From: Camelus ferus
Lineage: Eukaryota
Length of the DNA stretch: 64,000 nucleotides
Reading direction: 5' to 3'
Assembly (NCBI RefSeq): GCF_009834535.1
Contig: NC_045713.1
Location: 18,724,001 to 18,788,000, forward strand
Below the pieces are notes generated by a model that did not search any database, had not been told where the DNA came from, and saw only the letters and a program-made list of their open reading frames with translations. How positions within the stretch are numbered: the stretch's first letter is position 1; every line of letters begins with the position of its first letter. The position numbers and the translations under genes are program-made. Below, piece after piece: positions 3,218-23,602 of the stretch.

Positions 3218-5305
3218 CTACTCCTGGTCCTTGGCGTCGCCATGCGTGATGACGTAGCAGATGTTCTTGTAATCTACGTTGCCGCCCACGTCAGGGGGGA
3301 AGGCCTGCCACATGTTCTTGATCTGGGGAAAAGGTGTCATGGTATCTCCAACCGGTTCTTAGGCCACCCTCCCCCATCCCTCGACTTCTCTTGGGCCCCT
3401 CCCCCACTCACCTCTTCCTGGGAGAAGCGGTCACACTGCGTGGTGAGCAACTCTTCCAGGCTGGAGAGAGGCGACATACAGGGAGTTGAGATTGGGCTTG
3501 GTGAGGCCTTTCCACTACCTCCCATCTCATCCCTATTGCTACTCCCAGTCTCGCCTTGAAAACCAGGCTCACTCTGGATTCCTCATTGGTCTCCCAAACA
3601 CTCTGGCCTCCCTCCTTTTGCCCTTCCCTATATGTGCTGTGAAAATTTAATCCTTGCCCACTTCCACAGTCCTAATTTCTCCCTCATCCCTGGCAATGCC
3701 TAACTCTTTGTAGGATTTAAGGATGCTTTCTGTGTGAGAACAGCTGGAGGGGGTCACTTACAATTTCTTCTTGATGGTGCCCTTCCCCTCAGGGTCCAGG
3801 ACCTTGAAGGCTCCAGTGATCACATCCTCAGGGTCAGCACCTGGGGGTCAGAGGGCACATGAAGCTGAAGGGTTGCTAAGGGGTCAGTGCCTGAAAGGTC
3901 TAGGGAGAGACAGCTGGGGGCTTGGACCCGGGATACTTCATTCACCTTTGAGTTTCTCCCCAAACATGGTCAGGAAGACAGTGAAGTTGATGGGTCCGCT
4001 GGCTTCCTTCATCATGGCATCTAGCTCCTCATTCTTCACATTCAGACGCCCTGGATTAGGATGGGGGAAGCATGGGCTGGAGTGGGGTCTTGGGGCCAGA
4101 GGATGATGCTTCCCATGAATTCACATCATCCCACCCATTTTTCATATGGGTAAACTGAGGCCCAGTGTGGAGCCAGCAGGGCTGGAACACGAGGCTGCTG
4201 AATTCCCATGACTCTGCAGCCTTGAATCTTTACTGGTTGCTGGTTGGGTAGGAGGCTCACCCATGGCTGCGAAGGTGTCCCGCAGGTCTTCCTTGTCAAT
4301 AATGCCATCACGGTTCTGGTCGATTACCGTGAAGGCCTGTGGAGGGCAGGAGTAGGGAGGTTAGGATCCCTATGGCTAGGCTGCAGCATCCTTACCCCAG
4401 GCAGATCAGATTCTGGGTCCCCAGCCAGCCACACTCTTACACTCCAAGCAGAGAGGGGAACAAGGAATTCTAAACTCTTCCCCTCCCCCCAGAACAGGTG
4501 CACATTCTGGGGGGGGGGAGGGGCAGCAGGGGGTGCCTTTGATCAGCCTTCATTCTCCTTTCTTCCCACACTTACCTCCTTGAACTCCTGGATCTGAGTC
4601 TGATCGAACATGGAGAAGACATTGGAGCTTCCGCCCTCTGCTGCTGCCCTTCTTCTGGCCTTCTTGGGTGCCTGAGGGGTTAAGGTGGGGCAGAAGGGCT
4701 CATGGGCCAATCCCTACTCCTCTCTGGAGGCAATGGACTAGATTCAGGGTTCTTTGAGTCCATTCTTCTAAAGTAACTTCTGGCTCTAGACTTCCCCTTC
4801 CTTAGGACCTCTTTGCTGAGGGGACTTGCTTCAGTTGTATCCCAAATTCCTATCCATAGCCCTCAAGTCTCCATCCTTCCATCCTAGCCAACAATTGGAA
4901 CGTACCTCCCCGTCTCAGTGCCCTGAGCCTGCCTCCTCACAGACTTGCTGTGTGACCCTGATCCACTCATTCACCTTGTCTGAACGTCTACTTTCTCATT
5001 TATAGAATGGGAGTGAGAATCCCTGCCTGGCTGGTCCCAGGGGGTTTTAGGAAGATGGAGTGCAGGAAGGTATGATGCATGCTTTGAGAGGGACTGGGTT
5101 CCTGTGGGTGGAGTGTCTGGGCAGATTACTCTTGGTTTGGTCCTTCAGGGTATCATTCTGGACATTCCCCTTAGTGATACCAAGAAAAGGAAGATTCATC
5201 TTTTTTTTCTCTTGCTGACTGGGAACCAGCTACTTTCTTCCAAAGGCTGAGGCTGCCCTGAGGTCTGAGGGATCTGGGAAGGGCTGGGGGATTCTCACTC
5301 ACCAT
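3218..5305 (-). CDS. MYLPF: Myosin regulatory light chain, fast skeletal muscle (MYL11/MYLPF), 170 aa
   Basis: Minus-strand exons 5305-5303 (ATG only), 4671-4576, 4336-4261, 4050-3946, 3840-3762, 3460-3412 and 3322-3218 total 513 nt with GT-AG junctions. Translation: [90 protein letters not shown]. Confidence 0.98.
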
Positions 5306-7929: not shown

Positions 7930-9500
7930 TCAGGCAGGGCAGCGCGGCGCTCTTATTGGCTAAGGAATGCACCAATACTCCCGGCCCCCGCCCTCTCTCC
8001 GCCCTGTCCCCAACTGTCACCCCTCTCCCGCGCTTGTCTCGGATTGTCACCGATATCCCTGACCTGGCACCGCCTGCTGGCAGCGCCCCTACTCTTTGGA
8101 TGCTGCCATTGGCTGATACAGCTATCTATCTTCCTCCCGTTGCTAAAGTGAGAGAATGAGCTTATTGGCTACTGAGGCACATTAATCGCAAATTTGCCCT
8201 GGTCCCCCGCCCCCCTCAGCTGTCATTTCTTCCTGACCTTCTTGGGAGACCTAAAGAATTCCTCAATTCCTCAGCTCCTATTGACAGCGGATACTGTCTG
8301 TCATTGCCTAAATAGACATTATTGTCTGTCAATTTGACCTCCGCCTACTTCCCTTTTCATTGGCTCTCTTTTAATTATTCCTATGAGCCAGCCCTGCCTC
8401 TCCTCGCACAGCACCCGCCTCCTTCCGCCGTCATTCACTATTCAGCCATCTTTATTGGCCAGGAGGTTAAGCTTCCCGCTTTGCTATTAGTTACTTCCTT
8501 CGTTCCACCTCCTCCTGCCTTCACGCGCCCTCTCATTGGCTTTTAGAGCCCTCCGCCTTCTCCATTTCCTCTTCCTAAATTACCCACCCCCTTCCCACCT
8601 CCAACCCCACCCACCCTTCCAACGATTGGTAGAAACCCAGTTCCCTCTCTCCTATTATTCGTCTGAGCCCTCTGACAAGGCGGGAGGAAAAAGGAGCGCG
8701 ATGGGACCGCCCGCGCGCAGGCGTGGAACGCCGAAACGCTGGCCGCTTGGCCGGCACCGGGGCGTATGCGCAGGCGCGAGGTCGGCTGCTCGCCCGAAGC
8801 GGGAGGGAGGGGGCGGCGGCGAGAGATCGAGACGGGTGAGAGAGCGAGAGGGAGACCCCGACGCCTGGCATCCCTGGACCCCTGCCCCGCCTCCGCGCGC
8901 TTGGCAGCTGCCCGCGCGCCGCCCCTGACCCCAGCGCGCGCCGGGCCGCGCCCTTCGCCCTCTCCCCTTTCTCGGCAGGCGGCGCGGAGCGGCCTGAGGG
9001 GCGGCGCCTCTTGCGGCCGCCCCGGCGGGGGGATGTGAGGGGCGGCCCGCGGCCATGGAGACCGGCCCGGCGCCTCTGGTGGCCCCGCCGCGCCGTCATG
9101 GCGCCCCCGCGGCCCCTTCGCCGCCGCCCCGCAGCTCCCGGGCTGGGTCCGTCGTGGTGGTGGCTCCGGGGCCGCCAGTGACCACGGCCATTTCGGCCCC
9201 GGTCACTCTGGTTGCCCCCGGGGAGGCGCAGCCCGCATGGGTACCGGGTCCGACCCAGGCCTCGGCCTCGGCCTCGGGTCCGATGGTCACAGGCAGCACG
9301 GTGGTGGTGCTGACTCTGGAGGCCTCACCCGAAGCCCCGAAGGTGCAGGTCTCCGGCCCAGAGCCCTTGGCGCCCCAGGCTGTGGCAGGAGCCGAGATGT
9401 CTAAGGCTCTGGCCCCAGGGGCAGACTCTCCAAAGACGGAGGAGGCCGGAATCTCACCCGCGCCTGGACCAGGTACCCTTACCGGGAACCCCACCAGGAC
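7930..9500. promoter_or_regulatory. CpG island / promoter region of TBC1D10B with multiple CCAAT boxes
   Basis: Dense CpG and GC boxes at about 8690-9450. ATTGG boxes at 7955, 8108, 8164, 8359, 8454, 8535 and 8625. Confidence 0.8.
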
Positions 9501-12500
9501 CTCTTCCAGAACGGCTCCTGGGGCCCTGACCTCCAAACCCCCGCTTGCCCCCAAGTCGGGAACCACAGTGGCCTCAGGAGTGACTTCACGGGTTGCAGCA
9601 GTGACAGCAGGACAGGTGACAAGTGGACATGGAGCTGCAGCAGCAACATCAGCATCAACAGGACAGGCTCCAGAGGACCCCTCAGGGCCTGGAACAGGCC
9701 CTCCAGGGACATGTGAGGCTCTGGTAGCTGTCGTGACCGTGACCCCAGCTCCAGAGCCTGCTGAAAACNNNNNNNNNNNNNNNNNNNNNNNNNNNNNNNN
9801 NNNNNNNNNNNNNNNNNNNNNNNNNNNNNNNNNNNNNNNNNNNNNNNNNNNNNNNNNNNNNNNNNNNNNNNNNNNNNNNNNNNNNNNNNNNNNNNNNNNN
9901 NNNNNNNNNNNNNNNNNNNNNNNNNNNNNNNNTGGGCTGGCTCTGCGCAAGACGGACAAGTATGGCTTCCTGGGGGGCAGCCAGTATTCCGGCAGCCTGT
10001 GAGTACCCAGTGGGCACCCAGTAGGACTGCTTCAGGGAAGCAGAGGTTGGGGGAGGAGGAAATGATACACCTTGCCCATACTCTGGCAGCCCATCCTCTT
10101 CTGAGGATCCAGGGGGTGATTAGTGGGAGTGGGCTTCTTAGCAATCTGTCTTGCCTAGAGCATCCTGAGGTTTCTTTGGCACTGGCGTGTTAGGGTTTCA
10201 GACCAGGTGTCTGGAGTTCTGGATCTGAGCCTAAGCCTTGCTTAAGCTTTTGGTGTGTTGTGTGCCCTTGACTTAGTGTCTTCCTCATTTCCCTGCCTCA
10301 CTTTCCTCCTCTATGAGGTGAAAAGTTGAATGAGATGATATCTTAGGTTGTCCCAGCTCTTCAATGGGCAACTCCAGCCACAGGCCAGATATTCTGGAGG
10401 GCTGGCTGGACAGGGGTTCTGGTGGAGATCTTTGGTGCCTTAGGGGGAAAGTGTGGAGGGATGGAGGCACCTTCTCTTCCCCATAACCCTTGGTCTGATA
10501 GGGTGGTGAGATGGGGATGTCTGGATGGAGGGGACACTCTGAAGGCAAGGCCCCTCTGTGAAACAGAGAAAGGCAGTCTTGTGTTTTCATTGAAGGAAAG
10601 GAGGTGGGGGGGGGGGGGCCTCTTCCCCATTTCCTCATCTCCTCAGCCCGGCTTACTCTTTCCTAGTTCCCTCCAGGGGCCTGAGTCACTCCTAAGGTGG
10701 GGGTGTGATTGCTTCTGGCTTCTTCCTTCCCTCTCTTTGGATCCTGCCCATTGTTCCTGTACCCCTTTAACAGCATCACCTGAGACCCCCAGTGCCAGGC
10801 CCTATGCTGGGTACTAAGGATAGAATGGTTGTTTCAAGGTGCTCATCATCTAGAGGGAGAGACAAATACTTAAACAGTTGGTTTCAATATAATATGTTAC
10901 ATTTAGCCTAGAGATCATCACAGGGTTTTGTGAACACCTAGGGAAGGAATCTTGCCCAGTCTGGGAATTCAACTGAGCTGATGAATCTGAAGAATGAGTA
11001 GGATTTAGTCATGGCTCTGCGTGTTGGGATCAGGGGGACCTGCCTGGTGTTGGGGGAAGCCCTGTGGGAGGATATTCTAGGCAGGGTTTATAATCCAACA
11101 AAAAAATCGTAAAATCTTTGAGCACCAATATTCACAGTCCTGTGTGGGGTGGGCAACTGAAATTTGACTCTGGTGCTTTCCCATGCATGATGGATGCATT
11201 ATTGTGTCAAATTAATAGGTGAAGAAACAGGATTAGAGCAACTGAGTGAATTGCCCCACTCAAATAATTCGGATCTCTGTGACCAACAGCACTCTCCTTA
11301 ATACCATGCTGCCCTAAGGAACTTGGATTGAATTGGATTTTAGTGAGCCCCTCTTGTGTACCAGGCACTGTGCTGGGTGCTGATTCTGTGTTTTGTGATT
11401 TTGTCCTTTAAAATCCATCTTACATGCTGACAGAATCTACTTCTGAGGCAAGGCTGACTGTGGCACACGTTACCTTAAAACCTTTTAGTGGCTACTGTCC
11501 ACCAGATAAAATCCAAGTGCTTTAGCCTGAACACAGGCTCCTATTATCTGGCTCTGCCTGCCTCTCAGGTCTTCTTTTCCACTTCTCACCATGTGCTGTG
11601 ATCCTGTCGAAGTGATTGAAGTCTTTTTCCCTTCATACTCAGACTATACCATCAGCCAGAAATGCCCTTCTCTCTGTCTTTTCCTGGTATGTTCTACTCT
11701 CCTTCATGGCTTACCTCAGATGTTCCTTCCTCCAGGAAGCTTTCCCTGATATCCATTGCCCGTACTCCAATTAGTGCCTTTTCTGTGCATCCTTGTCATT
11801 GCATTTCCCTCACCATACTGCAGTTATCTTCCCTGCTAGCTTGTGGCCTTTTAAGGGCGGGAAAGGTATCTTACTCTTCCTGGCCTTTAGTAGAGTTTGA
11901 AATTGACTTATGATAGAGATTAATGAGAAATGATCTTTCTGTTTAAGGAGCTTCTAGGACCAGAGAAACTAACATTAAACCTCCCATTTAACAGTCCTTT
12001 ATATGCAGTTTCTCAATAGTCCTCTCATAACTTTGTGATGTAAGTGGTGGCATTCCTTTTTACAGAGAGGAAAGAGAATTAGGTTATCACTTGCCAAGAC
12101 TCCCCAACTTCTAAGGAACAGAACTGGGATTTGAGCTTAAGTCTGTCTGGACACCCAAGCTCTTTCTTCCACTCCACTCACTTCCTGGTACTGGCTCCCA
12201 CAAGTAACTGTTTCAGGACTGAGGGGGTATCTTGAGTGCGAAGCTCTGACAGAACAGTGAGCGAACAGTGCAAGGAAAGCTTCCTTTGTTTGTTAATCTG
12301 GGGCGATTTCAGGGAGGAGGAGGTAGAGGAAATTGCAGATGGTCCAAAGGCTCTCTAGAGTCTGGTAGAAGGAAACTCACACAGTTGCTTCTAAGGAGAC
12401 AGGGAAGTGTATTTGTTCTTTATTTTATTTTATGGATAATAATTGCTGTCACTTAACTATGTCCCTGCTTTGTGTTATTTCATATAATCTCTTAGGTAGA

Positions 12501-15500
12501 TATTGTTTTTCTCTGCATCTTACAAATGAGGAAATTGAGGCTTAGAGGAATTTAGTGACTAGCCCAAGACCACACAGTGAATAAGTAGTAAAGCTAGAAC
12601 TTGGATCCAGGTCTAATGCAGAATGTAGCTTTTAAATATTCCATACTCTCTTCCCAAACTTGTATGTGTCAGAAGTGGGATTTGAACACAGTGTCTGTAT
12701 AGAGATCCAACATGAGAACGCGATCTCTGTTCAGAGATTCCTTCCAAAGGGAATTTCTTCCAGTATGGTGAATTAGGGCCTTGGATGGCCAAGTGGCCAG
12801 ACATCCTGCTGTTTGGTATTGGTAGCTCACAAAATGCTTTTATGTTCTGGTCTCTCATTTGAACTTGGGGAGTTGGCTTGCCTCAGTTCCCCTAGAAAGC
12901 CAGGTTTTATACTACTGACCCCTTCCATACTCCTCATGTCCTCAGAGAGAGCTCTATTCCTGTGGATGTGGCTCGGCAGCGGGAGCTCAAATGGCTGGAG
13001 ATGTTCAGTAACTGGGATAAGTGGCTGTCACGGCGTTTCCAGAAGGTTTGAGAAGGCTGAGTGGTGGGCAGGGCAACGGACACAGAGGGTATGGGGGGGG
13101 GCAGGGAGGGCCTGTGTGCTCTGGAGAAGCCCAGGAACCTGATAGTTTCTGCTCTCTGGACCATGTTGGGGGTAGGCAGTACTTGGGCTTGGGGGGAAGA
13201 GTAGCTAAAGACAGAAGGCCAGGCCAGGTCCAATGGTGTTAAGCCCATGGGATGTGGGATGGGTGTCCCAGGGAGCCTGGGGACTGCTGGGGAAAGCTTG
13301 GAGGCTGTGCCCGCCACTGAGGCTGTTCCCCTGCATGGACTCTGCGTAGGTGAAGCTGCGCTGCCGGAAGGGGATCCCCTCCTCTCTCAGAGCCAAAGCC
13401 TGGCAGTACCTGTCCAACAGCAAGGAACTCCTGGAGCAGAACCCGGGCAAGTTTGAGGTGTGCACAGCTCCAGGGTGTGGGGACCTGTGACATTGTCTGT
13501 GTGAAGGGTGTCATTAGTTCCTCCAGATTGGAGATAATTGCTGCTGTTCCTCTGCAGGAGCTGGAACGGGCTCCTGGGGACCCCAAGTGGCTGGATGTGA
13601 TTGAGAAGGACTTGCACCGCCAGTTCCCTTTCCACGAGATGTTTGCTGCTCGAGGCGGGCATGGGTAAGGTGACCTGACTGAGTCAGTCAGCAAACATTT
13701 GTTGAGAGCTCCAGGTAGATATAGGGGCTGGGTTGAAAGCCTTCTAGGACTTCCACAGGAATGGTCCTTAATGGATTGTGTGTCAAGCCATATTGAAGGA
13801 AATGTCCTAGGAGGGAGACTCTGACTCAGAGTGATGAGGGGGAGGTGCTGGTGAGGGGATGGGGAGCCACATCACAGGTTCATTGAAGAGGCTGCATTTG
13901 AGCTGGGTTTGGAAGGGTAGATGGGAGACAGGTTTTTCCTGGCTTAAGGGTTATGTAAGCTGTGTCTGGGCAGTGGAGTTGGGTAGAGCTGAGGCTGGAA
14001 AAACAGTTTAGGGCCAGATCACCAAGGCCCTTAAATGTTCTGCCAAGAGCCTTGAGTTTTGTTCTGTATGCCAGGCTTCCTCAGGAAGTCTATATACTGC
14101 TCTATAGCTGTGTGCAAGATGTTTTTAGGTGGTTCTCAGCTTGAGGGAGCATGTGGATGGACTTTTTTTTTTTATCAATAAGTTCATCCTTTCAGCAGAT
14201 ATTTATCAAGCACATGCTATCAGCCAGGTCCTGTTTTAGTCACAGATGATAGCGGTGAGCAAAAGACAAAAACTCCTGCCCTCAGGGGGCTTATTATAGT
14301 TAGTAGTGATAGACAGTAGGTAAGATAAAGAAGGAAAGTATGTTGTATGTACAGTGATGGTAAATATTAAGGAAGAGTTTAAAGCAAGAAAAGGGGATAG
14401 AGAATGTGACTAGAGATGGGGTTACAAGTGACTTGATCTGACTTGTGTTTTAAAAGGATCGTTCTGGTTGCTGTGCTGAGGACAGACCATAGGAGACAAG
14501 GGTAGAAGCAGAGAGACCAGTTAGGAGACTGTTTTCATAATCCAGGAGAGAGACGATGACAGACAGACCAGGATGATAGCAGTGGGGTGATGGGGAGAAG
14601 TGGTTGGAGTCTGGATATGTTTTGAAGGTAGAGCCTAAAGGATTTACCAGTGGATTAGACATGGAGTGTGTATGAGAGTAGTTACGGAAGACTCTTAATG
14701 TTTTTCGACATTTTTCTTAGAAAACTAGAAGAATGGAGTTGCAATATACTGATATGGATGGGGAAAACTGGGGGAAAAGTAGATTTGAGGATGTATCAGG
14801 AGCTCATTTTTGGAATGTGAAGTTTGAAATACTTCTTGGACATACAGATGGAGATGCCAAGTAAACTGGATGTCCAGTATTATATAAGTTTGGATTTCGG
14901 TTAGAGGTTTAAACTGGAAATAATTTGGAAATTTAAAGTTGTCAACCTTTACGTGGGACTAAATCTCCCCCATCGGTCTGGATGAGGTCATTAAGGCAGC
15001 AGGTATAGCTATGAAAGGAAGCTGTTCAAAGATTGAGCCCTGCAGCTCCAACATTTCAAGAAGGGGAAGATGAGAAAGAACCAGTAAAGGAGAAGGACTA
15101 GCAGGAGAAGCTGGTGAGGTATGAGGAGAACCAGGAGAGTATGATTCCTAGAAGCAAAATCAAGAGTGGTTTCAGGATCAGCTGTAGGAAATGTTGCTGA
15201 TGGGTCAAGTAAAGTCAAGTCTGCAAATGGATCTCTAGATTTAGGAATGTGAGGGTCATTGGTGACCTTGATAAAAGCAGTTTTGTGTAGAGCAGTGGGT
15301 TAAAACCTGATTGAAGAATGGAAGGAAAGAAATTGAAGATAGCAGGTCTGTACTCTGGGTTTTTTTTTTTTTTTTTTACTGAATAGGTAGGAAAGAAATG
15401 GTGTGATATTTGGAGGGGAAATAGGATAAAGGGAGGTTTTTGTTTTGTTTTGTTTTTTAAGCTGGAGGAAATGACAGATGTTGGTATGCCAACAGGAACG

Positions 15501-18500
15501 ATCTAGTAGATTGAGAAAAATTGATGATACACGAGTGATGGGAAGGTTGCTGGAGGGATGGCCTGTGTAGGTTAGGAGATGGGATGCAGTGCCCAAGTGG
15601 AAAGGCTGTGGTTGGCCAGGATCACAGATAGTTCACCCACAGCAACAGGGGAGAAGGTGGTGGCACAGAGACAATCTGGTAGGTGAATGTAGCATGGGAA
15701 GTTACATGTTTATTTTAATATGCATTAGGTAAGATAACTAGTATTATCAAACCTGTCATTTCAAGGATGCTATTGCAGACTGGAGAAAAAAAATTAAGTA
15801 GGTAATAGTAGGGGTGGCATGCAGATATACCACAAATGAAGATCACACTTCAATGACAATTTTGGGAAACACTATTGTAAGCAGTGGTCATGAGTGGGTG
15901 ACTGGAGGCAGGGAGAGGATTTGGGATGTTATTACATTTTCCTGGGTAAGAGATGAAGGTCTGAGCTGCTCACTGGCTGGGAGGTGGAGATAGGGAATAG
16001 AGATGAATGAAATTCAGAATGTGGTGTTGATAACACTTGATTAGCTGTGGGGAGTGATGGAAGGCTCTCTGTTTTCTGACGTGGGGCTGAGTGGATGGAA
16101 TTCCCATGCACAGCAGTGGGGCACCCTCAAGGAAGAGGAAGAGGTCTAGGGCAGTTTATTTTGGATGCAGAGACAAGAGAAAGGTCTGAGGCATAGCTGG
16201 TTTCCCAAGCATTCACCAAAAACCAGGGCCCTGCCCTGGGGGAACTGATGAAATCCAGTGAGACAGATAAGGCAGGCCATGCCCTGGGGGAGCTCCTGCT
16301 CTGGGGTGGTAAAAACATTCAGACAGTGCTGGAGGCAGGCTGGTGCTGCACTGTTGAAAGCTTCCTGAAGAAGGTGACCTTGAGGGTTTATAGGATGGTG
16401 GCAGATGGAGAGAGAGCACAGTCTGTGCTGGGGAATGGGTAGGGAGCACGTGGGTGTGCAGGCAAGGGTGGAAGTCTGGAGCCTGGAATAAAGCTTAGAT
16501 TATAGTCTGAGTCTTTGGCTTAAACTTGATAGGCAGGATTAGGAAGCTGGATGGAGGTGTGTGGTGTGATGGTCAAGGTGTGAGGTTGATCTGGAACACA
16601 ATCATAGGGCAGCTCTTGATGTGGTTGGTGGGGGTGGGTTTATTTGGGGCAGAGAGCTCCCAACTCCTGTGATTGCCTTCATGGTCTTTCTCAATATCCA
16701 TAGGCAACAGGACCTGTATCGAATCCTGAAGGCCTACACTATCTACCGGCCGGATGAGGGCTACTGCCAGGCCCAGGCCCCCGTGGCTGCAGTGCTGCTC
16801 ATGCACATGCCTGCTGAGGTCAGCAGATGCTGGTCCTGGTTGGGGAGGGGCTGGGAGGATCTTGGCCTGCAGTGGTGATGGGGGAGCTTCCTGCTCCCTG
16901 TTTCTCAGGCTCCATCCCTCTCTCCTTGTTCCTGCCCTTCCCAGCAAGCCTTTTGGTGCCTGGTGCAGATCTGTGACAAGTACCTCCCCGGTTACTATAG
17001 TGCAGGGCTGGTAAGTGTCTGAAGGCTGGGTGCAGTTGGGGCTGTGACTTTTCCCTAAGGCTGCAGAGTGGTCCTTGTCCTGCCTCACCCTGTGCCACTC
17101 TGTCCCTCTGCTCTGGACCTCTCCCACTGAGGTGAGGATCCCCTACCCCAAGACTAGTTCTACCCCAAGGGGGGGCCACAGCAGGCCTCACCTGATGGCT
17201 CGTCCCACTTCCAGGAGGCCATTCAGCTGGATGGAGAAATCTTTTTTGCACTGTTGCGCCGGGCCTCCCCGCTGGCACATCGGCACCTGCGACGGCAGCG
17301 CATTGACCCTGTGCTCTACATGACAGAATGGTTCATGTGCATCTTCGCCCGCACCCTGCCCTGGGCTTCAGTGCTGCGTGTCTGGGATATGTTCTTCTGT
17401 GAAGGTGATTCTGTAGCCATTTGGGCCTTGAGGGGGCTGGGGATTCCATGGTGGCTGCCAGAGAGAGGGTAGCCCGCTGACAGAAGGTACTTGGTGGGCC
17501 TACACTTCACTACAAGAAGTCTGGGGGCTGGAGAAACTGAGCCCTGGTCTTGTTGGCTTTGCCACCAGCCCATAGTTTGCTCTACCTCCCAGGAACCTGA
17601 AACCCATGGCAGTTTATTTTCCTTCTTGGGTCCTCAGTCTTCTCACCCATAAGGTTGGCTGTAGACAGGGATGGGGTCTGTGTGTTCCTCCTGATTGGGA
17701 CAGGCTGAGATCCCAGGCTGATCACCCAGGCTGTCTTCTTTTTGACCCTGCAGGTGTCAAGATCATCTTCCGGGTGGCCCTGGTGCTGCTGCGGCACACG
17801 CTGGGCTCAGTGGAGAAGCTGCGTTCCTGCCAAGGCATGTATGAAACCATGGAGCAGCTGCGCAACCTGCCCCAACAGTGCATGCAGGAGGACTTCCTGG
17901 TGCATGAGGTAGGTGCTGGCCTTAGCATACCTCACACCTGCTTCAGCCCATCCCCATCGCCATCCCCATTTTCATTTTAGTACCTGTTTCTTCTCTGTCT
18001 AGGTGACCAACCTCCCAGTGACAGAAGCACTGATTGAGCGAGAGAACACAGCCCAGCTCAAGAAGTGGCGGGAAACCCGGGGCGAACTGCAGTACCGGCC
18101 CTCACGGAGACTGCATGGTTCCCGGGCAATCCATGAGGAGCGACGTCGGCAGCAGCCACCCCTGGGCCCTTCCTCCAGCCTCCTTAGCCTCCCTGGCCTC
18201 AAGAGCCGAGGCTCCCGGGCCGCTGGAGGCGCCCCCTCCCCACCCCCTCCTGCCCGCAGGGCCAGTGCTGGGCCTGCCCCAGGGCCTGTGGTCACCGCTG
18301 AGGGACTGCGTCCATCTCTTCCTTCACCTACTGGCAACAGCACCCCACTGGCTCCCAGCAAGGAGACCCGCAGGCAGGAGAAAGAACGGCAAAAACAGGA
18401 AAAGGAACGTGAGAAGGAGCGGCAGAAACAGGAGAAAGAGCGGGAGAAGCAGGAGAAGGAACGGCAGAAGCAAGAGAAGGAGCAGCAGAAGCAGGAGAAG

Positions 18501-18635
18501 GAGCGGCAGAAGCAGGAGAAGAAGGCCCAAGGCAAGAAGCTCTCGCTGCGTCGGAAAGCAGATGGGCCCCCTGCCCCCCAGGACGGCGGGGACAGGTCGT
18601 CAGCATCAGAGGCCCGGCAGGATGCTTACTTCTGA
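9055..18635 (+). CDS. TBC1D10B: TBC1 domain family member 10B (Rab GAP), about 805 aa
   Basis: Exons 9055-9998 (contains the N gap), 12946-13045, 13350-13457, 13558-13664, 16704-16818, 16945-17010, 17215-17404, 17754-17908 and 18003-18635 total 2418 nt in frame. Pro/Ala/Thr-rich N-terminus [16 protein letters not shown]-finger [10 protein letters not shown] and Q-finger GYCQAQ. C-terminal KQEKE repeats, ending QDAYF*. Confidence 0.97.
9769..9932. other. Assembly gap (164 N) inside TBC1D10B exon 1
   Basis: Run of N. The reading frame is preserved across it. Confidence 0.99.
14190..15650 (-). mobile_element. Ancient LINE-2 fragments in TBC1D10B intron 4
   Basis: Begins with the typical antisense L2 3'-end motif (atatttatcaagcacatgctat..ccaggtcctg) and continues in L2-like purine-rich sequence. 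Boundaries are approximate. Confidence 0.65.
18364..18527 (+). repeat. Coding tandem repeat (R/E)QKQEKE, predicted coiled coil in the TBC1D10B C-terminus
   Basis: Repeated CAGAAGCAGGAGAAGGAGCGG-like units of about 21 nt encoding [50 protein letters not shown]. Confidence 0.9.
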
Positions 18636-19234
18636 CCTCTGCCCTGGGGCTGGACTGCATGGCCCCCTTTTTCCCTCAGCCAAGAGCAGGCCTGGCCTGG
18701 GGTGTTGCTCCCAACCCCCTTGGCAGGTGTCCCTCTTTCTGAGGAAAGTGGCTTGATTCCCCATTTCCTTGCCAGCTGCTGATCCCTACACAGCCAGGAC
18801 AGTCAGAGTACACAGGGCAGCTGCATTTCCCTGGGGCAGCAGTGAGCAAATCTGGAGCCCCTCACCTCTAGTTAAGCCCAGCTGGGGTCTCTGTCACTTC
18901 TGCCCCAATTCCTTCTGGGGTCCCTTCCCAGGTGCTGTCCTGACTGGCCTTTTGTCACCACAGGGGTGACTCTTGGCGATGGGAGTCAGCGGTTTTCAGA
19001 TTCTTACACTCCAGTCACTCCCCTTACCCATGAAGTGGAGCTGGGTTCCTTTTTCCCTTCTTGAGTCTTGCCTATCTCCCCCACTTCCTGGCTGGGGGCC
19101 AAGACTCTTCTTGCTCTACTTCTGGACATCTCTGTGTTGTAATTATGTACAGAAGACCTGGTCAGCCCAGGGTGGGGGTGTTCACTCTATCTTCTGTCCT
19201 TTGGTTCTCCCTCCACAATGTTCTTGCACTCTAG

Positions 19235-19240
19235 TTTATT
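19235..19240 (-). terminator. Candidate minus-strand poly(A) signal for the PHETA-like locus
   Basis: TTTATT on the plus strand, about 440 nt downstream of the reconstructed PHETA-like stop codon. Confidence 0.4.
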
Positions 19241-19679
19241 TAAGGGGACATGCACTGGAACAGGAAATGTCCCCCTCTTCCCCACCACCACCCTCCTTGC
19301 TCTCCTTCCTCTTCATCTACCTTTCTCTGTATTCTCAGGCCTCCCCTGCTTTGTCTCACCAGAACCCCCACCTTTTACCTTGTTCCCTTCCAACCCTCCA
19401 GCCCGTACCTGGGTAAGGGGTCTTCCCTTGAGCTCCAGGGGGTGGAACCCAGTGTTTACATTTTCTTCTGTCTCTGCCCCCACCCCGTACAGCGCTTTGA
19501 GGAACCGGAAAAGAACCTGCTGTTGTACCTGGGTCCGTCTCCTGCCTTGTTATTTGATGAAGGGGGTTAGAGTAAGTACTAGGAGGGAGGGAGTGATAGA
19601 GCCAGCCAGGATCTGGGTGTCTGTTGAAGCGGTCAGCTGGTCTTGGCCAGTAGGTACCTTTTGGCCTTTGATCCATCTC

Positions 19680-20277
19680 TCAGTCACTTATCAACAGGTA
19701 ATGATTGAGCTCCACCTCTGCCTGGGATCTGCTGCCTCCATTGTCACTGGCCTCTTGGAGCCCTCTTTGCACTGCCTGCAGCACCTGGATCTCCTTCCCA
19801 AAGTGCTCATGCAACTCCTGGAAGCTGGAGAGGGGACTGAAGGTGGCTGGGAAGTCACAGTCCTCTGGGGGTGATCTTGGCCAGCTCCCTGGTACAGCTC
19901 CCGGTACTGGGCCTCCAGGGGGCGTAGCAGCACAGCCAGCCACCTCCAGCTTGCCCTAGCCAGTGCCCACAGCCAGGCTTCCAGCTCCTGGTTTTCTGCT
20001 GCCAGCTTGTAGGCCTGCCCACCTTCTACCCCTGGTGTCAGGATGGTAAAGGCATAGGGGTTCTGTGGCCCCAAGGTGTGGCTCCACTTGGTAGTTCTCT
20101 AACAGGATGAGGCTCAGGGGCATGTGGTCTGCCTGGTGTTCCAGGTAAAGAGGTTTCCCCAGAGGATGAACCAGTGGTGTTGGTAGGGGTATTTCAGGCC
20201 CCCTTTAGCAGGATGCCCTACCGGTCTGGATCCTGTGTTTTGTACCCACAGAAGAAACAGCACGGATTTTGCTTCAT
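19680..20277 (-). pseudogene. PHETA/Sesquipedalian (FAM109/IPIP27)-like PH-domain plus F&H-motif pseudogene
   Basis: Reconstruction across frameshifts: MKQNPCCFFCGYKTQDPDR*GILLKGA*NT/YQHHWFILWGNL/YLEHQADHMPLSLILLENYQVEPHLGATEP/YAFTILTPGVEGGQAYKLAAENQELEAWLWALARASWRWLAVLLRPLEAQYRELYQ/..SPLSSFQELHEHFGKEIQVLQ..*. It matches PHETA1/2 as I recall them (MKLNERS..GFL..WFVLRGNMLFYFE..FAF..YVLAAESQ..EGWVKALSRAS..L; F&H FARLHECYGQEI). Two in-frame stops (20220-20218, 20196-20194) and four frameshifts. A splice acceptor lies 11 nt before the ATG. Confidence 0.88.
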
Positions 20278-21049
20278 AGTAGTCCAATCTGGGAGGAAAC
20301 TAGGGGCAAGAGAGAGGAGGGGTGGTCCATCCGGTTATGCTGGGGCCCCCCATGCTGCCCTTCTCAGGCTTTAGTTGGGTCTTTCTGGGCACAGCCTTGG
20401 CCTACTGGGATTCAGACTCAGTATCCTCAAGAGGTAGAGGTCTTGTCCGCACAACACTGAACCTAACCCTCCTAACCTCCCAAACCCAGCTCTTCCCCTT
20501 GGGCCAGATTATAAAACCTGGGTAGGGGCCACTTGGCTAGGGTCCTGCTTGGGGGGAGGGGGGAGTCTGGGTATTCACTGCTGCCCTTTCCCAGGCCTAC
20601 CTGAGATGAAGGCAAAGGGACTTCTGGGACTTCGGTACTGGGCACAGGTCACACTGCCACCTCTCCTGTTACGGCTCTTAACCACCTCAGAAACCAGGAA
20701 CTTAACGCAGGGAATAGGCGTAGGGTAAATGACTTCCCCTGGGTCCTAAAAGGAGCTGGGTTCAGAAGGTGTCCCAAGAGCCACCAGGAGAACCGAGCAT
20801 CCCCTCTGGGACAAGAGCAAGGCCACACCTCAGACTAGGAGACAGCGGGCAACTGGACGCTTACAGTGGGAAGGCAGGGTTTCTAATGAGATGGTGATGG
20901 GTGCAGAGCCAGCCCTGGGGAAAAGGCGACTCAGCCCGGGAAAGGGAAACTAGGGCAGCAACCCACTGACCCTGCTGGGACTTTGCTTCTCCATCGTGAT
21001 CCTGGGCTCCCCTTTAAGTAGAGTGCCCCCCACTTTCTCCTCAGCCTCT

Positions 21050-21760
21050 ACTGCTGTAGGAGGGAATCGAGACCACTTCCGGCCGTCCTCGTCCGATCAG
21101 GGTCTAGGCGTTAATACGTCCCGTCTTCTCGCCATTGTCGCCCCACACGGCTCACGTCACTTCTGCGGGGGGTGTGGGTGTGGGTGTGGGTGTGTCTTTC
21201 CCCACTCAGTGCGTATTTCCGCTTGTTCCCGCAGTTAGTCTTAGCTCTAACCCAAGCGAAGCCACTTCCGGCCTTCCCTGGAGCCTGCCGCAGTTCTCTT
21301 CCGGGTGATGGCGGCTGAGTGCCCCGGATGTAGCCCTGGCGAAAGCCTCTCTCCCTTTCTTCCCCCGCCTTCCCTGGATCCTTAGGTGAGCGCGCGCCGG
21401 TGGGACTGCTGGAGTCCCCGGGGCTCTGCCGCCTCTCGAATTTGTACACAGCCCAAGACAGTTGGGGGGGGTCACCCAGCGGAGTTGGAGTTCGGCGCAG
21501 GGAGGAGCGGGGCTGCCGGGGCGCCAGGTCCTGGGCCTGCCAGGGCCCCACAGACTTCCAGGAAGCTGGGGGTGGTGGAGCGGGTGTCAGCCCGCGGAGC
21601 ACCTTCGCTCCCAGGACTGCGGGGTCCGGGAATGGGGGTGGTCACGTGGAGGAACCCATCTTTCGTTCAGGGTGGGAGTGCCCATGGGGAGCTCCTCCGC
21701 GCGTTCACCTCTCCGTCCCCGCAACTGCAACTCTTCCGGATGCCAGACTGGTGCCTCCTG
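21050..21760. promoter_or_regulatory. CpG-island promoter of CD2BP2, probably bidirectional
   Basis: CpG-rich, with ETS/GABP-type CTTCCGG motifs (about 21075, 21265, 21298) and a YY1-like GATGGCGGC (21307-21315). Exon 1 donor TAG|GTGAGC at 21385/21386. Confidence 0.75.
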
Positions 21761-21945
21761 GCTGCCAGCTCCCCTTATGGCCCTTGATTCTGTGTTCCCT
21801 CCTGTCCCTAACTAGATCTAGTAACGATCAGGTGAAAGATTTGTTGTGCAGGGAGCCCTCTCGCGGTAAGTATTGTGCTCACCAAGTTCCCCTAATCTTC
21901 ACCCTTTCCCTCGGCTCAGCTTGGGGAAGGCCCCTCTATCCAGTC

Positions 21946-23602
21946 ATGCCAAAGAGGAAAGTGACCTTCCAAGGCGTGGGAGATGAGGATGATGAGGATG
22001 AAATCAGCGTCCCCAAGAAGAAGGTGAGGGGGCCAGACTCCTGCGTTCTGGGGAAGAGTGAGGGGAGAAAAATAGGAGCTAGAAGCTAGCAGAGAAACCT
22101 GGAGGGACAAAGAAAGGGTGGAAGGGGCTAGAGTTTCCATGCGCTGTGAGAAATGGGTTTGAAAGATTTTCAGTTTGAGTCTAGAACCTAGGATATTTGG
22201 GGCTAATAGCTAGTAACCTACATCTCTCTCGACTTCTGGCTCCTGCTTACAGTTGGTGGATCCTGTGGCTGGGGCAGGGGGTCCTGGGAGCCGCTTCAAA
22301 GGCAAACACTCTTTGGACAGCGATGAGGAAGATGATGATGATGAAGGGTCTAGCAAATATGACATCCTGGCCTCAGAGGATGTAGAAGGTGAGTTATACC
22401 CAAGAATTGACTTTCTACTAGAGGAATAAATAGATGCTCCTGTGGTTGTGGAGCACTGGAGGCTCCTGTCTCTTTTGCACACCTAGCATGGGACTCCTGT
22501 GTTTTGGGTGCAGGTCAGGAAGCAGCCACGCTCCCCAGTGAGGGAGGTGTGCGGATCACACCCTTCAACCTGCAGGAGGAGATGGAGGAAGGCCACTTTG
22601 ATGCTGATGGCAACTATTTCCTGAACCGGGATGCTCAGATCCGAGACAGCTGGCTGGACAACATTGACTGGGTGAGGTCCAGGGGCTGGCATGGCTGGGC
22701 CTGGAGGTGGCAAGTGCTGTTGGGCCTGGAACCTGAGACAGTTTGTCAGAAATAAAACTCTCCTATTTTCGCATTACAGGTAAAGATCAGGGAGCGGCCA
22801 CCTGATCAGCACCCACCATCAGACTCAGAGGAGGAGGACAGTCTGGGCCAGACACCATTGAGCACCCAAGCCCTCCTGGAGGGCCTTCTGGAGCTGCTGT
22901 TGCCAAGAGAGACAGTGGCTGGGGCACTGAGGCGTCTAGGGGCCCGAGGAGGAAGCAAAGGGGGCAGCAAGGGGCTGGGGCGGCCCAGTTCCCCTCAGCG
23001 CCTAGACCGGCTCTCTGGGTTGGCCGACCAGATGGTGGCCCAGGGTAACCTCGGAGTATATCAAGAGACAAGGGAACGGTTGGCTATGCGGCTGAAGGGA
23101 TTGGGGTGTCGGACCCAGGGACCTCCTGACCCCACACCACCACCCTCTCTGGACATGTTTGCTGAAGAAGTGGCAGAGGGCGAGCTGGAGACCCCAACCC
23201 CTACCCAGAGAGGAGGTAAGATTGTAGGGCAAAGGAGGGGTGTTGTGGGCAGGGGGCAGGCCACTTGAGGCCCCTGTGGCTTTGCTTGTTATTTTAGAAG
23301 CAGAGTCTTCTGGAGATGGTCTGGCGGATGTGATGTGGGAATATAAGTGGGAGAACACGGGGGATGCTGAGCTGTACGGGCCCTTCACCAGCACCCAAAT
23401 GCAGGTAAGCTCCTTTCTACTCCATTTTGCCTCTTCTCTACCTCTCTCCACTCCGTCAGTCCTGCCCTAGCTCTGCCCTCTCTTCCTGCAGACTTGGGTG
23501 AATGAAGGCTACTTCCCAGATGGTGTTTATTGCCGGAAGCTGGACCCTCCTGATGGACAGTTCTACAACTCCAAACGTATTGACTTTGACCTCTACACCT
23601 GA
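21946..23602 (+). CDS. CD2BP2: CD2 cytoplasmic tail-binding protein 2 (U5-52K, GYF domain), 341 aa
   Basis: Exons 21946-22023, 22253-22388, 22514-22671, 22780-23215, 23298-23404 and 23492-23602 total 1026 nt. Translation: [87 protein letters not shown]. Confidence 0.98.

Follow-up and report, generated by a model that had tools for sequence, protein, structure and literature searches.

A probable unitary pseudogene of an ancient third PHETA/Sesquipedalian lineage between TBC1D10B and CD2BP2 in Camelus ferus

Introduction

The architecture of PHETA1, which combines a PH domain, a helix and an F&H motif, binds OCRL, the phosphatase of Lowe syndrome, and INPP5B. To our knowledge, PHETA1 and PHETA2 have been treated as the sole Ses/IPIP27 adaptors of OCRL. 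Here we describe a PHETA-like coding remnant on the minus strand of a 64-kb stretch of the Camelus ferus genome (contig NC_045713.1, positions 18,724,001 to 18,788,000; hereafter the window, numbered from its first letter). The remnant lies between TBC1D10B and CD2BP2 and is very probably a unitary pseudogene of an ancient third PHETA/Sesquipedalian lineage, dead in place.

The window gene can be compared with four described or annotated relatives. PHETA1 (FAM109A, Ses1, IPIP27A) is like it in having a PH domain, a long helix, a 13-residue F&H motif (F at 2, H at 6, a hydrophobic residue at 9) and a single coding exon behind a non-coding exon. It is unlike the window gene in sharing only ~30% identity with the remnant, in falling within clade I of the two vertebrate clades described below, and in carrying the PPPxPPRR motif for PACSIN2; moreover, its locus adjoins SH2B3, unlike that of the window gene (PMC7272357). 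PHETA2 (FAM109B, Ses2, IPIP27B) shares the family and the domain plan and, like the mammalian proteins of clade II, is without the PACSIN2 motif, but it adjoins NAGA, SMDT1 and NDUFA6, a locus other than that of the window gene (PMC7272357). Zebrafish pheta2 (zgc:153733), one of two teleost duplicates (IIa and IIb), resembles the window gene in its cd2bp2 and mylpf neighbourhood and its membership of clade II, whereas it is intact, is longer (282 amino acids in the related cyprinid locus of Garra rufa), has an intron in its coding sequence, and keeps an SPKLWPKR stretch that tetrapod members have lost. Finally, the mammalian genes annotated as 'sesquipedalian-1-like' occupy the same slot in the same orientation as the remnant, share its start codon and, in hippo and beaver, its stop codon, and are 85-90% identical to it in nucleotides within Cetartiodactyla; these genes are open, with a ratio of non-synonymous to synonymous substitution rates (dN/dS, or omega) of ~0.23, whereas the window copy is broken and drifting.

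Results

A PHETA-like reading frame spread over three frames

The remnant was delimited by a tblastn search with the hippo orthologue (P0038) and by codon-anchored alignment to four intact coding sequences, and its F&H motif was read from the translation.

20277-19680, minus strand: PHETA-like coding remnant, probable unitary pseudogene
19826-19788, minus strand: remnant of the F&H motif, SFQELHEHFGKEI, with F at 2, H at 6 and F at 9

The conserved ATG corresponds to 20277-20275 and the conserved terminal TGA to 19682-19680, and both stand at positions equal to those in hippo and beaver. An earlier note on this DNA, made from its letters alone, had given the location, the sequence and the ATG at 20277 exactly as we found them. 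After the ATG, the homologous reading is spread over three frames: it follows frame 0 until ~20188, continues in frame 2 (HHWFILWGNLF), passes to frame 1 (YLEHQADHMPLSLILLENYQVEPHLGATEP) and back to frame 2 (YAFTIL...YRELYQGAGQ), and ends with a last stretch in frame 1 that contains the F&H region between SPPEDCDF and LLISD and is terminated by the stop at 19682-19680.

When the intact hippo orthologue was searched against the whole 64-kb window by tblastn, it matched with expect values (E) of 1e-39 and 9e-33 in three frames, and no second match was found within the window. A phmmer search of the 127-residue open piece (19694-20074) against a library of 1.84 billion representative proteins gave an E of 5e-22 and 75% identity to a 214-residue 'sesquipedalian-1-like' protein. 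Chance similarity was rejected on these values (phmmer 5e-22, tblastn 1e-39). The remnant is 89.6% identical in nucleotides to the hippo orthologue, while its translated identity to the PHETA1 proteins of buffalo and echidna is ~30% (E of 1e-8 to 1e-10).

The two tblastn matches, at E 1e-39 and 9e-33, align pieces of the window to the PH part of the hippo orthologue, the PH domain itself being present as a remnant only. The segment between the PH and F&H regions is kept in the window (...WLAVLLRPLEAQYRELY...) and is predicted to be helical. The F&H motif has been defined as a 13-residue helix with F at position 2, H at position 6 and position 9 occupied by a bulky hydrophobic residue (10.1101/616664), and its F, L and H are invariant among 33 clade-II proteins and likewise among 10 clade-I proteins. 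The PPPxPPRR motif was absent from the window remnant and from mammalian clade-II proteins, and present in clade I. No ATG-initiated frame of the window extends to the F&H motif. The earlier note's assignment of the locus to the PHETA family is borne out by the PH remnants, the helix and the F&H motif, by the Pfam PF00169 domain and modelled PH fold of the orthologues, and by the match of the hippo orthologue to this locus alone in the window.

Eleven lesions and a neutral pattern of substitution

The coding sequences of cow, hippo, sea lion, beaver and platypus were aligned by codon and the window DNA was added to them; lesions were scored against the four intact eutherian ones (cow, hippo, sea lion and beaver). 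The following were read from this alignment, all on the minus strand; nt stands for nucleotide.

20220-20218: stop TAG at orthologous codon 23, which is GAG or GAA in intact orthologues
20196-20194: stop TGA at orthologous codon 32, which is CGA or AGA in intact orthologues; a CpG transition
20188/87: 1-nt deletion, frameshift
20150/49: 4-nt deletion, frameshift, within the conserved GNLLFY strand of the PH domain
20060: 1-nt insertion, lengthening a C run by one C, frameshift
19875/74: 7-nt deletion, frameshift, between the helix and the F&H region
20271/70 and 20259/58: paired deletions of 7 nt and 2 nt just past the ATG, net 9 nt, frame restored
20206/05: in-frame 3-nt deletion
19990/89: in-frame 3-nt deletion in a GAG repeat context
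19709/08: in-frame 6-nt deletion

In total, there are 11 separate lesions in 600 nt, comprising two in-register stops and nine indel events, four of the latter being uncompensated frameshifts. The two stops and four frameshifts listed in the earlier note were all recovered (6/6); the compensating pair of deletions and the three in-frame deletions come in addition.

Changes unique to each terminal branch were then counted. On the branch leading to the window sequence, 17 changes are non-synonymous and 4 synonymous, which gives a ratio of ~1.35, against the following values in the intact genes.

Cow branch: 10 non-synonymous, 16 synonymous, ratio 0.21
Hippo branch: 9 non-synonymous, 7 synonymous, ratio 0.42
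Sea lion branch: 16 non-synonymous, 12 synonymous, ratio 0.43
Beaver branch: 26 non-synonymous, 28 synonymous, ratio 0.29

Compared with the other tips pooled (61:63), the 17:4 count of the window gives an odds ratio of 4.4 (Fisher p = 0.0085). Pairwise dN/dS among the intact orthologues is 0.16-0.33, and the maximum-likelihood omega under a codon model is 0.233; a dN/dS calculation among intact orthologues had been put forward in the earlier note. Near-invariant residues of the PH domain are replaced in the window only (RRW to HHW, LRGN to LWGN). The replacements in the window are largely CpG transitions, and the observed/expected ratio of CpG across the remnant is 0-0.2. Altogether, the window copy is drifting neutrally, whereas its intact orthologues are under purifying selection.

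Intact orthologues in the same slot

The cow orthologue is a single-exon gene for 206 amino acids on chromosome 25, antisense between CD2BP2 and TBC1D10B. The same slot, in the same orientation between CD2BP2 and TBC1D10B, holds an intact gene in cow, hippo, sea lion, beaver, platypus and turtle, and the layout of a GYF gene (-), a PH gene (+) and a TBC gene (-) was found in all six and in bonobo. Around the remnant, 7 kb are collinear with hippo (85.8% identity) and with cow (82.0%). With the cow protein as query, open proteins of ~190-215 residues were retrieved from ruminants, hippo, hyena, pinnipeds, a canid, moles, a shrew, beaver, squirrels, kangaroo rat, tree shrew, armadillo, marsupials, monotremes, turtles and Anolis. 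These intact orthologues bear automatic names ('sesquipedalian-1-like', in NCBI and UniProt), and the prediction that the gene would be intact under that label in other mammals was thereby confirmed. The call of a unitary pseudogene is supported: intact orthologues stand in the same slot, and the copy here has disabling lesions and relaxed constraint. No mouse or rat clade-II protein turned up among the general protein searches.

The C-terminal tail of the ruminant protein (...SRSPTGGGEAGTQQLC; cow L001:10001-10621) differs from that of hippo and beaver (...SRSQAEVEQELNHCLLTSD; L005 and L011), a small insertion after ...AGATCC changing the frame downstream of the F&H motif. From these sequences, the tail of the clade-II protein seems to be unconstrained. 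A clade-II PH protein of the turtle Platysternon (P0082) is named 'sperm-associated antigen 8', which is probably an annotation error.

Outside these loci, no recognisable neighbour was found within 10 kb on either side of the gar, catshark and Xenopus genes.

A structurally preserved transcription unit

Three elements of a transcription unit accompany the remnant.

21440-21252, minus strand: candidate non-coding first exon, within a CpG island head-to-head with CD2BP2
20302-20300, minus strand: candidate splice acceptor (T/C)AG, here TAG, 22 nt before the ATG, in 5/5 aligned sequences
19240-19235, minus strand: AATAAA, 440 nt past the stop codon

The first exon of a whale gene model (P0074) matches the window at 21440-21255 (E 2e-27) and then continues at 20298-20272, which implies an intron from ~21251 to 20300. 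On this basis we infer a donor TGG/GTTAGA, with its GT at 21251-21250, the exact position being approximate to that extent. The observed/expected ratio of CpG is 0.5-0.8 at 21000-21800. Whale and colobine gene models splice an upstream exon on right before ..FLPDWTT.., at the acceptor at 20302-20300. The AG 11 nt before the ATG (20290-20289), which had been proposed as the acceptor, does exist in the window; it is absent in beaver and so is not conserved, and it is probably not the acceptor in use. An A(A/T)TAAA stands 421-449 nt past the stop in cow, hippo, sea lion and beaver, and the position of the poly(A) signal is conserved in this respect. Altogether, these three elements suggest that the transcription unit is structurally preserved.

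Two vertebrate clades

A maximum-likelihood tree of 58 sequences was built under LG+C20 with ultrafast bootstrap and SH-aLRT support and rooted on invertebrates. The vertebrate members split into clade I (100/97) and clade II (100/99). Clade I holds tetrapod PHETA1, zebrafish Pheta1, frog proteins under the names sesquipedalian-1 or -2 and a second lineage of birds, while clade II holds Latimeria, gar, the two teleost duplicates, salamanders, sharks, turtles, Anolis and all of the 'sesquipedalian-1-like' genes of mammals. Two pieces of the remnant, the longest ones available unaltered, group with cow and hippo (95/82). In this tree, which answers to the phylogeny outlined in the earlier note but has no mammalian PHETA2 among its rows, the remnant falls outside the PHETA1 clade (100/97 versus 100/99). 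The note's description of the lineage as ancient agrees with the layout common to cow, hippo, sea lion, beaver, platypus and turtle, and with a cyprinid member between cd2bp2 and mylpf.

The frog members of clade II are short (Xenopus laevis P0108, 167 residues; Pelobates P0115, 163 residues) and fast-evolving, and they keep the F..LH motif; with their long branch, their placement is uncertain.

Protein searches with the cow orthologue, a 12-sequence profile and Latimeria queries, together with a clade-I scan of metagenomes, yielded no mammalian PHETA2, nor did a motif search of the results. The same searches gave PHETA1 from buffalo, golden mole, echidna, a bovid contig and a mouse-like contig, as well as the second clade-I lineage of birds. 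The two bird lineages are distinct, since Upupa SESQ1 stands with the PHETA1 group and a Cyanoderma protein (P0320) and a GC-rich metagenome contig (L018:1001-1801) stand apart; the latter two have a His-rich insertion in the beta1-beta2 loop. This second lineage is probably avian PHETA2. The placement of mammalian PHETA2 in clade I rests on that lineage and on a clade-I signature, RASFGY..LVVRELE, which human PHETA2 presumably carries. It rests further on the similarities published for the zebrafish proteins (PMC7272357).

The predicted intact protein

An AlphaFold model of the hippo orthologue, computed from a 33-sequence alignment, had a mean pLDDT of 73, with values >85 in the PH core. The model contains a seven-strand PH sandwich (residues 22-98), a helix (102-137), a disordered linker and a second helix (161-188) that bears the F&H motif. 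When the model was compared with the PDB by Foldseek, the PH domains of GRP1, PEPP1, AKT and PLEKHA7 were returned with a probability of 1.0, consistent with the Pfam PF00169 domain carried by the orthologues. Analogy with PHETA1/2 suggests that the intact protein would serve OCRL and INPP5B as an adaptor on endosomes.

Zebrafish pheta2 as a member of the same lineage

Orthology to zebrafish pheta2 was traced through the Garra rufa locus (L008), published primers and the tree. In Garra rufa, a clade-IIa gene, PH gene (+), lies between cd2bp2 (-) and mylpf (+), with the same relative orientations as in mammals and without tbc1d10b. The zebrafish pheta2 primers of Ates et al. (PMC7272357) match the Garra clade-II gene at the start, the middle and the stop, with 0, 3 and 1 mismatches, respectively. 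The published reverse transcription-PCR product of zebrafish pheta2 is 825 bp (PMC7272357), which fits a protein of ~283 residues, and the Garra gene encodes 282. It was also reported that zebrafish pheta2 has no synteny with human PHETA1 or PHETA2 and is less similar to both human PHETAs than zebrafish Pheta1 is, the similarities to human PHETA2 being 48.9% for Pheta1 and 39.2% for Pheta2 (PMC7272357). The simplest reading of these sequence comparisons is that zebrafish pheta2 is an orthologue of the window gene and not of mammalian PHETA2; the orthology assigned to zebrafish pheta2 is probably mislabelled. The earlier note had known of no functional description of the lineage, and this stands for mammals, as no publication was found on the mammalian 'sesquipedalian-1-like' clade-II gene; it does not stand for zebrafish, in which the orthologue has been knocked out as 'pheta2' (PMC7272357).

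Names in this group are inconsistent, the suffixes -1, -2 and -like varying across amphibians and fish. The Danio rerio protein P0280 (256 residues) is called sesquipedalian-2 in UniRef and sesquipedalian-1 in nr; it is zebrafish Pheta1, a clade-I member, by its length (a 771-bp gene in PMC7272357) and its position in the tree. In syngnathids and Siganus, four models (P0179, P0207, P0208 and P0216) fuse the clade-II PH gene with the adjoining MYLPF and are named 'myosin regulatory light chain 2', mis-annotations that reveal the synteny.

Independent losses in other mammals

In bonobo, where the synteny and the ATG are kept, codon 54 reads TAG, and the copy has a deletion of 1 nt and an insertion of 12 nt; it shares no indel with the window copy. 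Colobine, lemur, bat and two whale gene models are truncated or run through alternative frames at still other positions, and in these sequences the whale, bat, lemur and colobine copies look broken. Because the lesions differ between the window copy, bonobo and the other models, the gene was lost several times independently. On the question of shared versus independent lesions raised by the earlier note, the bonobo copy was broken independently of the window copy.

Flanking genes and other features of the window

The genes around the remnant were located as follows.

9055-18635, plus strand: TBC1D10B, from open reading frames (ORFs) and exon matches to platypus and turtle TBC1D10B
21946-23602, plus strand: CD2BP2 coding region, with its ATG at 21946, head-to-head with the remnant
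3224-4665, minus strand (the strand of the pseudogene): MYLPF exons, matched in tblastn by the MYLPF portion of the fused fish model P0207

The TBC1D10B and CD2BP2 exons that flank the remnant read cleanly. TBC1D10B is convergent with the remnant, the two stop codons being 1045 nt apart. No canonical AATAAA or ATTAAA was found on the plus strand at 18635-20400, past the TBC1D10B stop, and the 3' end of TBC1D10B may overlap that of the pseudogene. A run of 164 N lies at 9769-9932, inside exon 1 of TBC1D10B. The last exon of this gene (18300-18560, plus strand) contains a long K/E/Q-rich repeat, and the opposite strand has a spurious repetitive ORF of 178 residues. In the whole window, AATAAA was seen 86 times versus ~26 expected, with the excess at 29-35 kb and 55-58 kb; it probably comes from the A-rich tails of interspersed repeats.

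Discussion

We very probably see here a unitary pseudogene of clade II, an ancient third lineage of the PHETA/Sesquipedalian family, which died where it stood. According to this reading, the intact gene would have encoded a protein of ~200 residues in which an N-terminal PH domain is followed by a long helix and, at the C terminus, an F&H motif; by analogy with PHETA1/2, this protein would have docked on the ASH-RhoGAP-like domain of OCRL and INPP5B on endosomes. Its transcription would have begun with a first exon inside the CpG island of CD2BP2 and run antisense between CD2BP2 and TBC1D10B, with the whole coding sequence within the second exon. Two nonsense mutations and four net frameshifts would have destroyed the frame from codon 23, before the first PH strand, and neutral drift would have followed, such that no adaptor protein would be possible and the locus would yield at most a non-coding transcript. 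The clade is old: at this locus, monotremes, turtles and cyprinid fish each have a member.

Several observations weigh against this account. Sharks are nested within tetrapod clade II, and the rows of frog and Anolis have long branches; therefore, the internal order of clade II is unreliable. The tree was built without any mammalian PHETA2 sequence, and the binding of OCRL by tetrapod clade-II proteins would follow from analogy with PHETA1/2. In addition, an exact look-up of the 127-residue ORF returned no record, and the lesions are known from a single assembly.

The last of these points is what a different explanation would build on, namely that the gene is intact in the species and that the stops and frameshifts are errors of sequencing or assembly. 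Some indels do sit in short homopolymers or repeats (the C added at 20060, the GAG repeat at 19990), and all lesions come from this assembly alone, but they number eleven in 600 nt, including deletions of 7 nt and 4 nt and two point nonsense changes, and they are accompanied by the neutral 17:4 branch pattern (p = 0.0085), by a depletion of CpGs and by clean exons in the adjoining TBC1D10B and CD2BP2. Given the neutral pattern and the eleven lesions, an assembly error is therefore very unlikely. Still less can be said for a lineage-specific retrocopy of PHETA1 or PHETA2 inserted between TBC1D10B and CD2BP2. Its single-exon coding sequence would suit such an origin, yet this is the family norm in the examined tetrapod loci and the shark locus; the copy has ~30% identity to PHETA1 as opposed to 89.6% nucleotide identity to the syntenic hippo gene, the slot is filled from platypus and turtle to a cyprinid, conservation extends to the upstream exon, the acceptor and the poly(A) signal, and neither a poly(A) tail nor target-site duplications are present. 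The retrocopy was rejected outright, as it is refuted by synteny, and the earlier note was right that this is not a recent one, in view of the ~30% identity to PHETA1, the syntenic orthologues and the 7 kb of collinearity with hippo and cow.

Whether the lineage is truly a third one depends on PHETA2, as clade II could instead be the PHETA2 lineage itself, with mammalian PHETA2 (22q13) a relocated or duplicated member of it. The tree rows without mammalian PHETA2 leave room for this, and the fish member is already named pheta2. Nonetheless, the two clade-I lineages of birds fit a placement of both PHETA1 and PHETA2 in clade I, as does the clade-I signature that human PHETA2 presumably carries. 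Furthermore, zebrafish Pheta1 is closer to human PHETA2 (48.9%) than Pheta2 is (39.2%) (PMC7272357). We consider this alternative quite improbable, and wherever PHETA2 falls, mammals such as cow still have three genes. A function of the remnant itself, as an antisense or bidirectional non-coding RNA acting on CD2BP2 or TBC1D10B or through a short peptide made from it, also appears unlikely, if somewhat less remote. A candidate first exon, an acceptor and a poly(A) signal are still present, and the gene converges on the 3' end of TBC1D10B; against this, no ATG-initiated frame reaches the F&H motif, and the 89.6% identity to hippo is near the regional average of 85.8%.

Beyond the window, we consider it likely that clade II is a third lineage, 'PHETA3', residing at CD2BP2-(TBC1D10B)-MYLPF and including zebrafish 'pheta2', that it has been kept in many mammals and that it has been lost repeatedly and independently. 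This claim spans selection in cattle and the dog family and losses here, in bonobo and probably in other primates, whales and a bat. The lineage would predate the split of ray-finned fish from tetrapods. It was overlooked, being represented by automatic annotations only, broken in bonobo and other primate models, and not met as a mouse or rat protein; the gene is already known to annotation pipelines, and what the window holds is an ordinary, well-decayed pseudogene.

If the claim is true, zebrafish pheta2 phenotypes model a gene that apes lack, and the zebrafish double knockout (PMC7272357) removes the PHETA1 orthologue and the orthologue of the third gene, not PHETA2, which would change how the renal and craniofacial phenotypes of zebrafish are mapped to humans. 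Likewise, a third adaptor may be present, without having been accounted for, in work on OCRL adaptors that uses cells of species keeping the gene, such as canine or bovine kidney lines. The repeated losses would amount to natural knockouts, which can be compared with the lineages that retain the gene for the role of the third adaptor.

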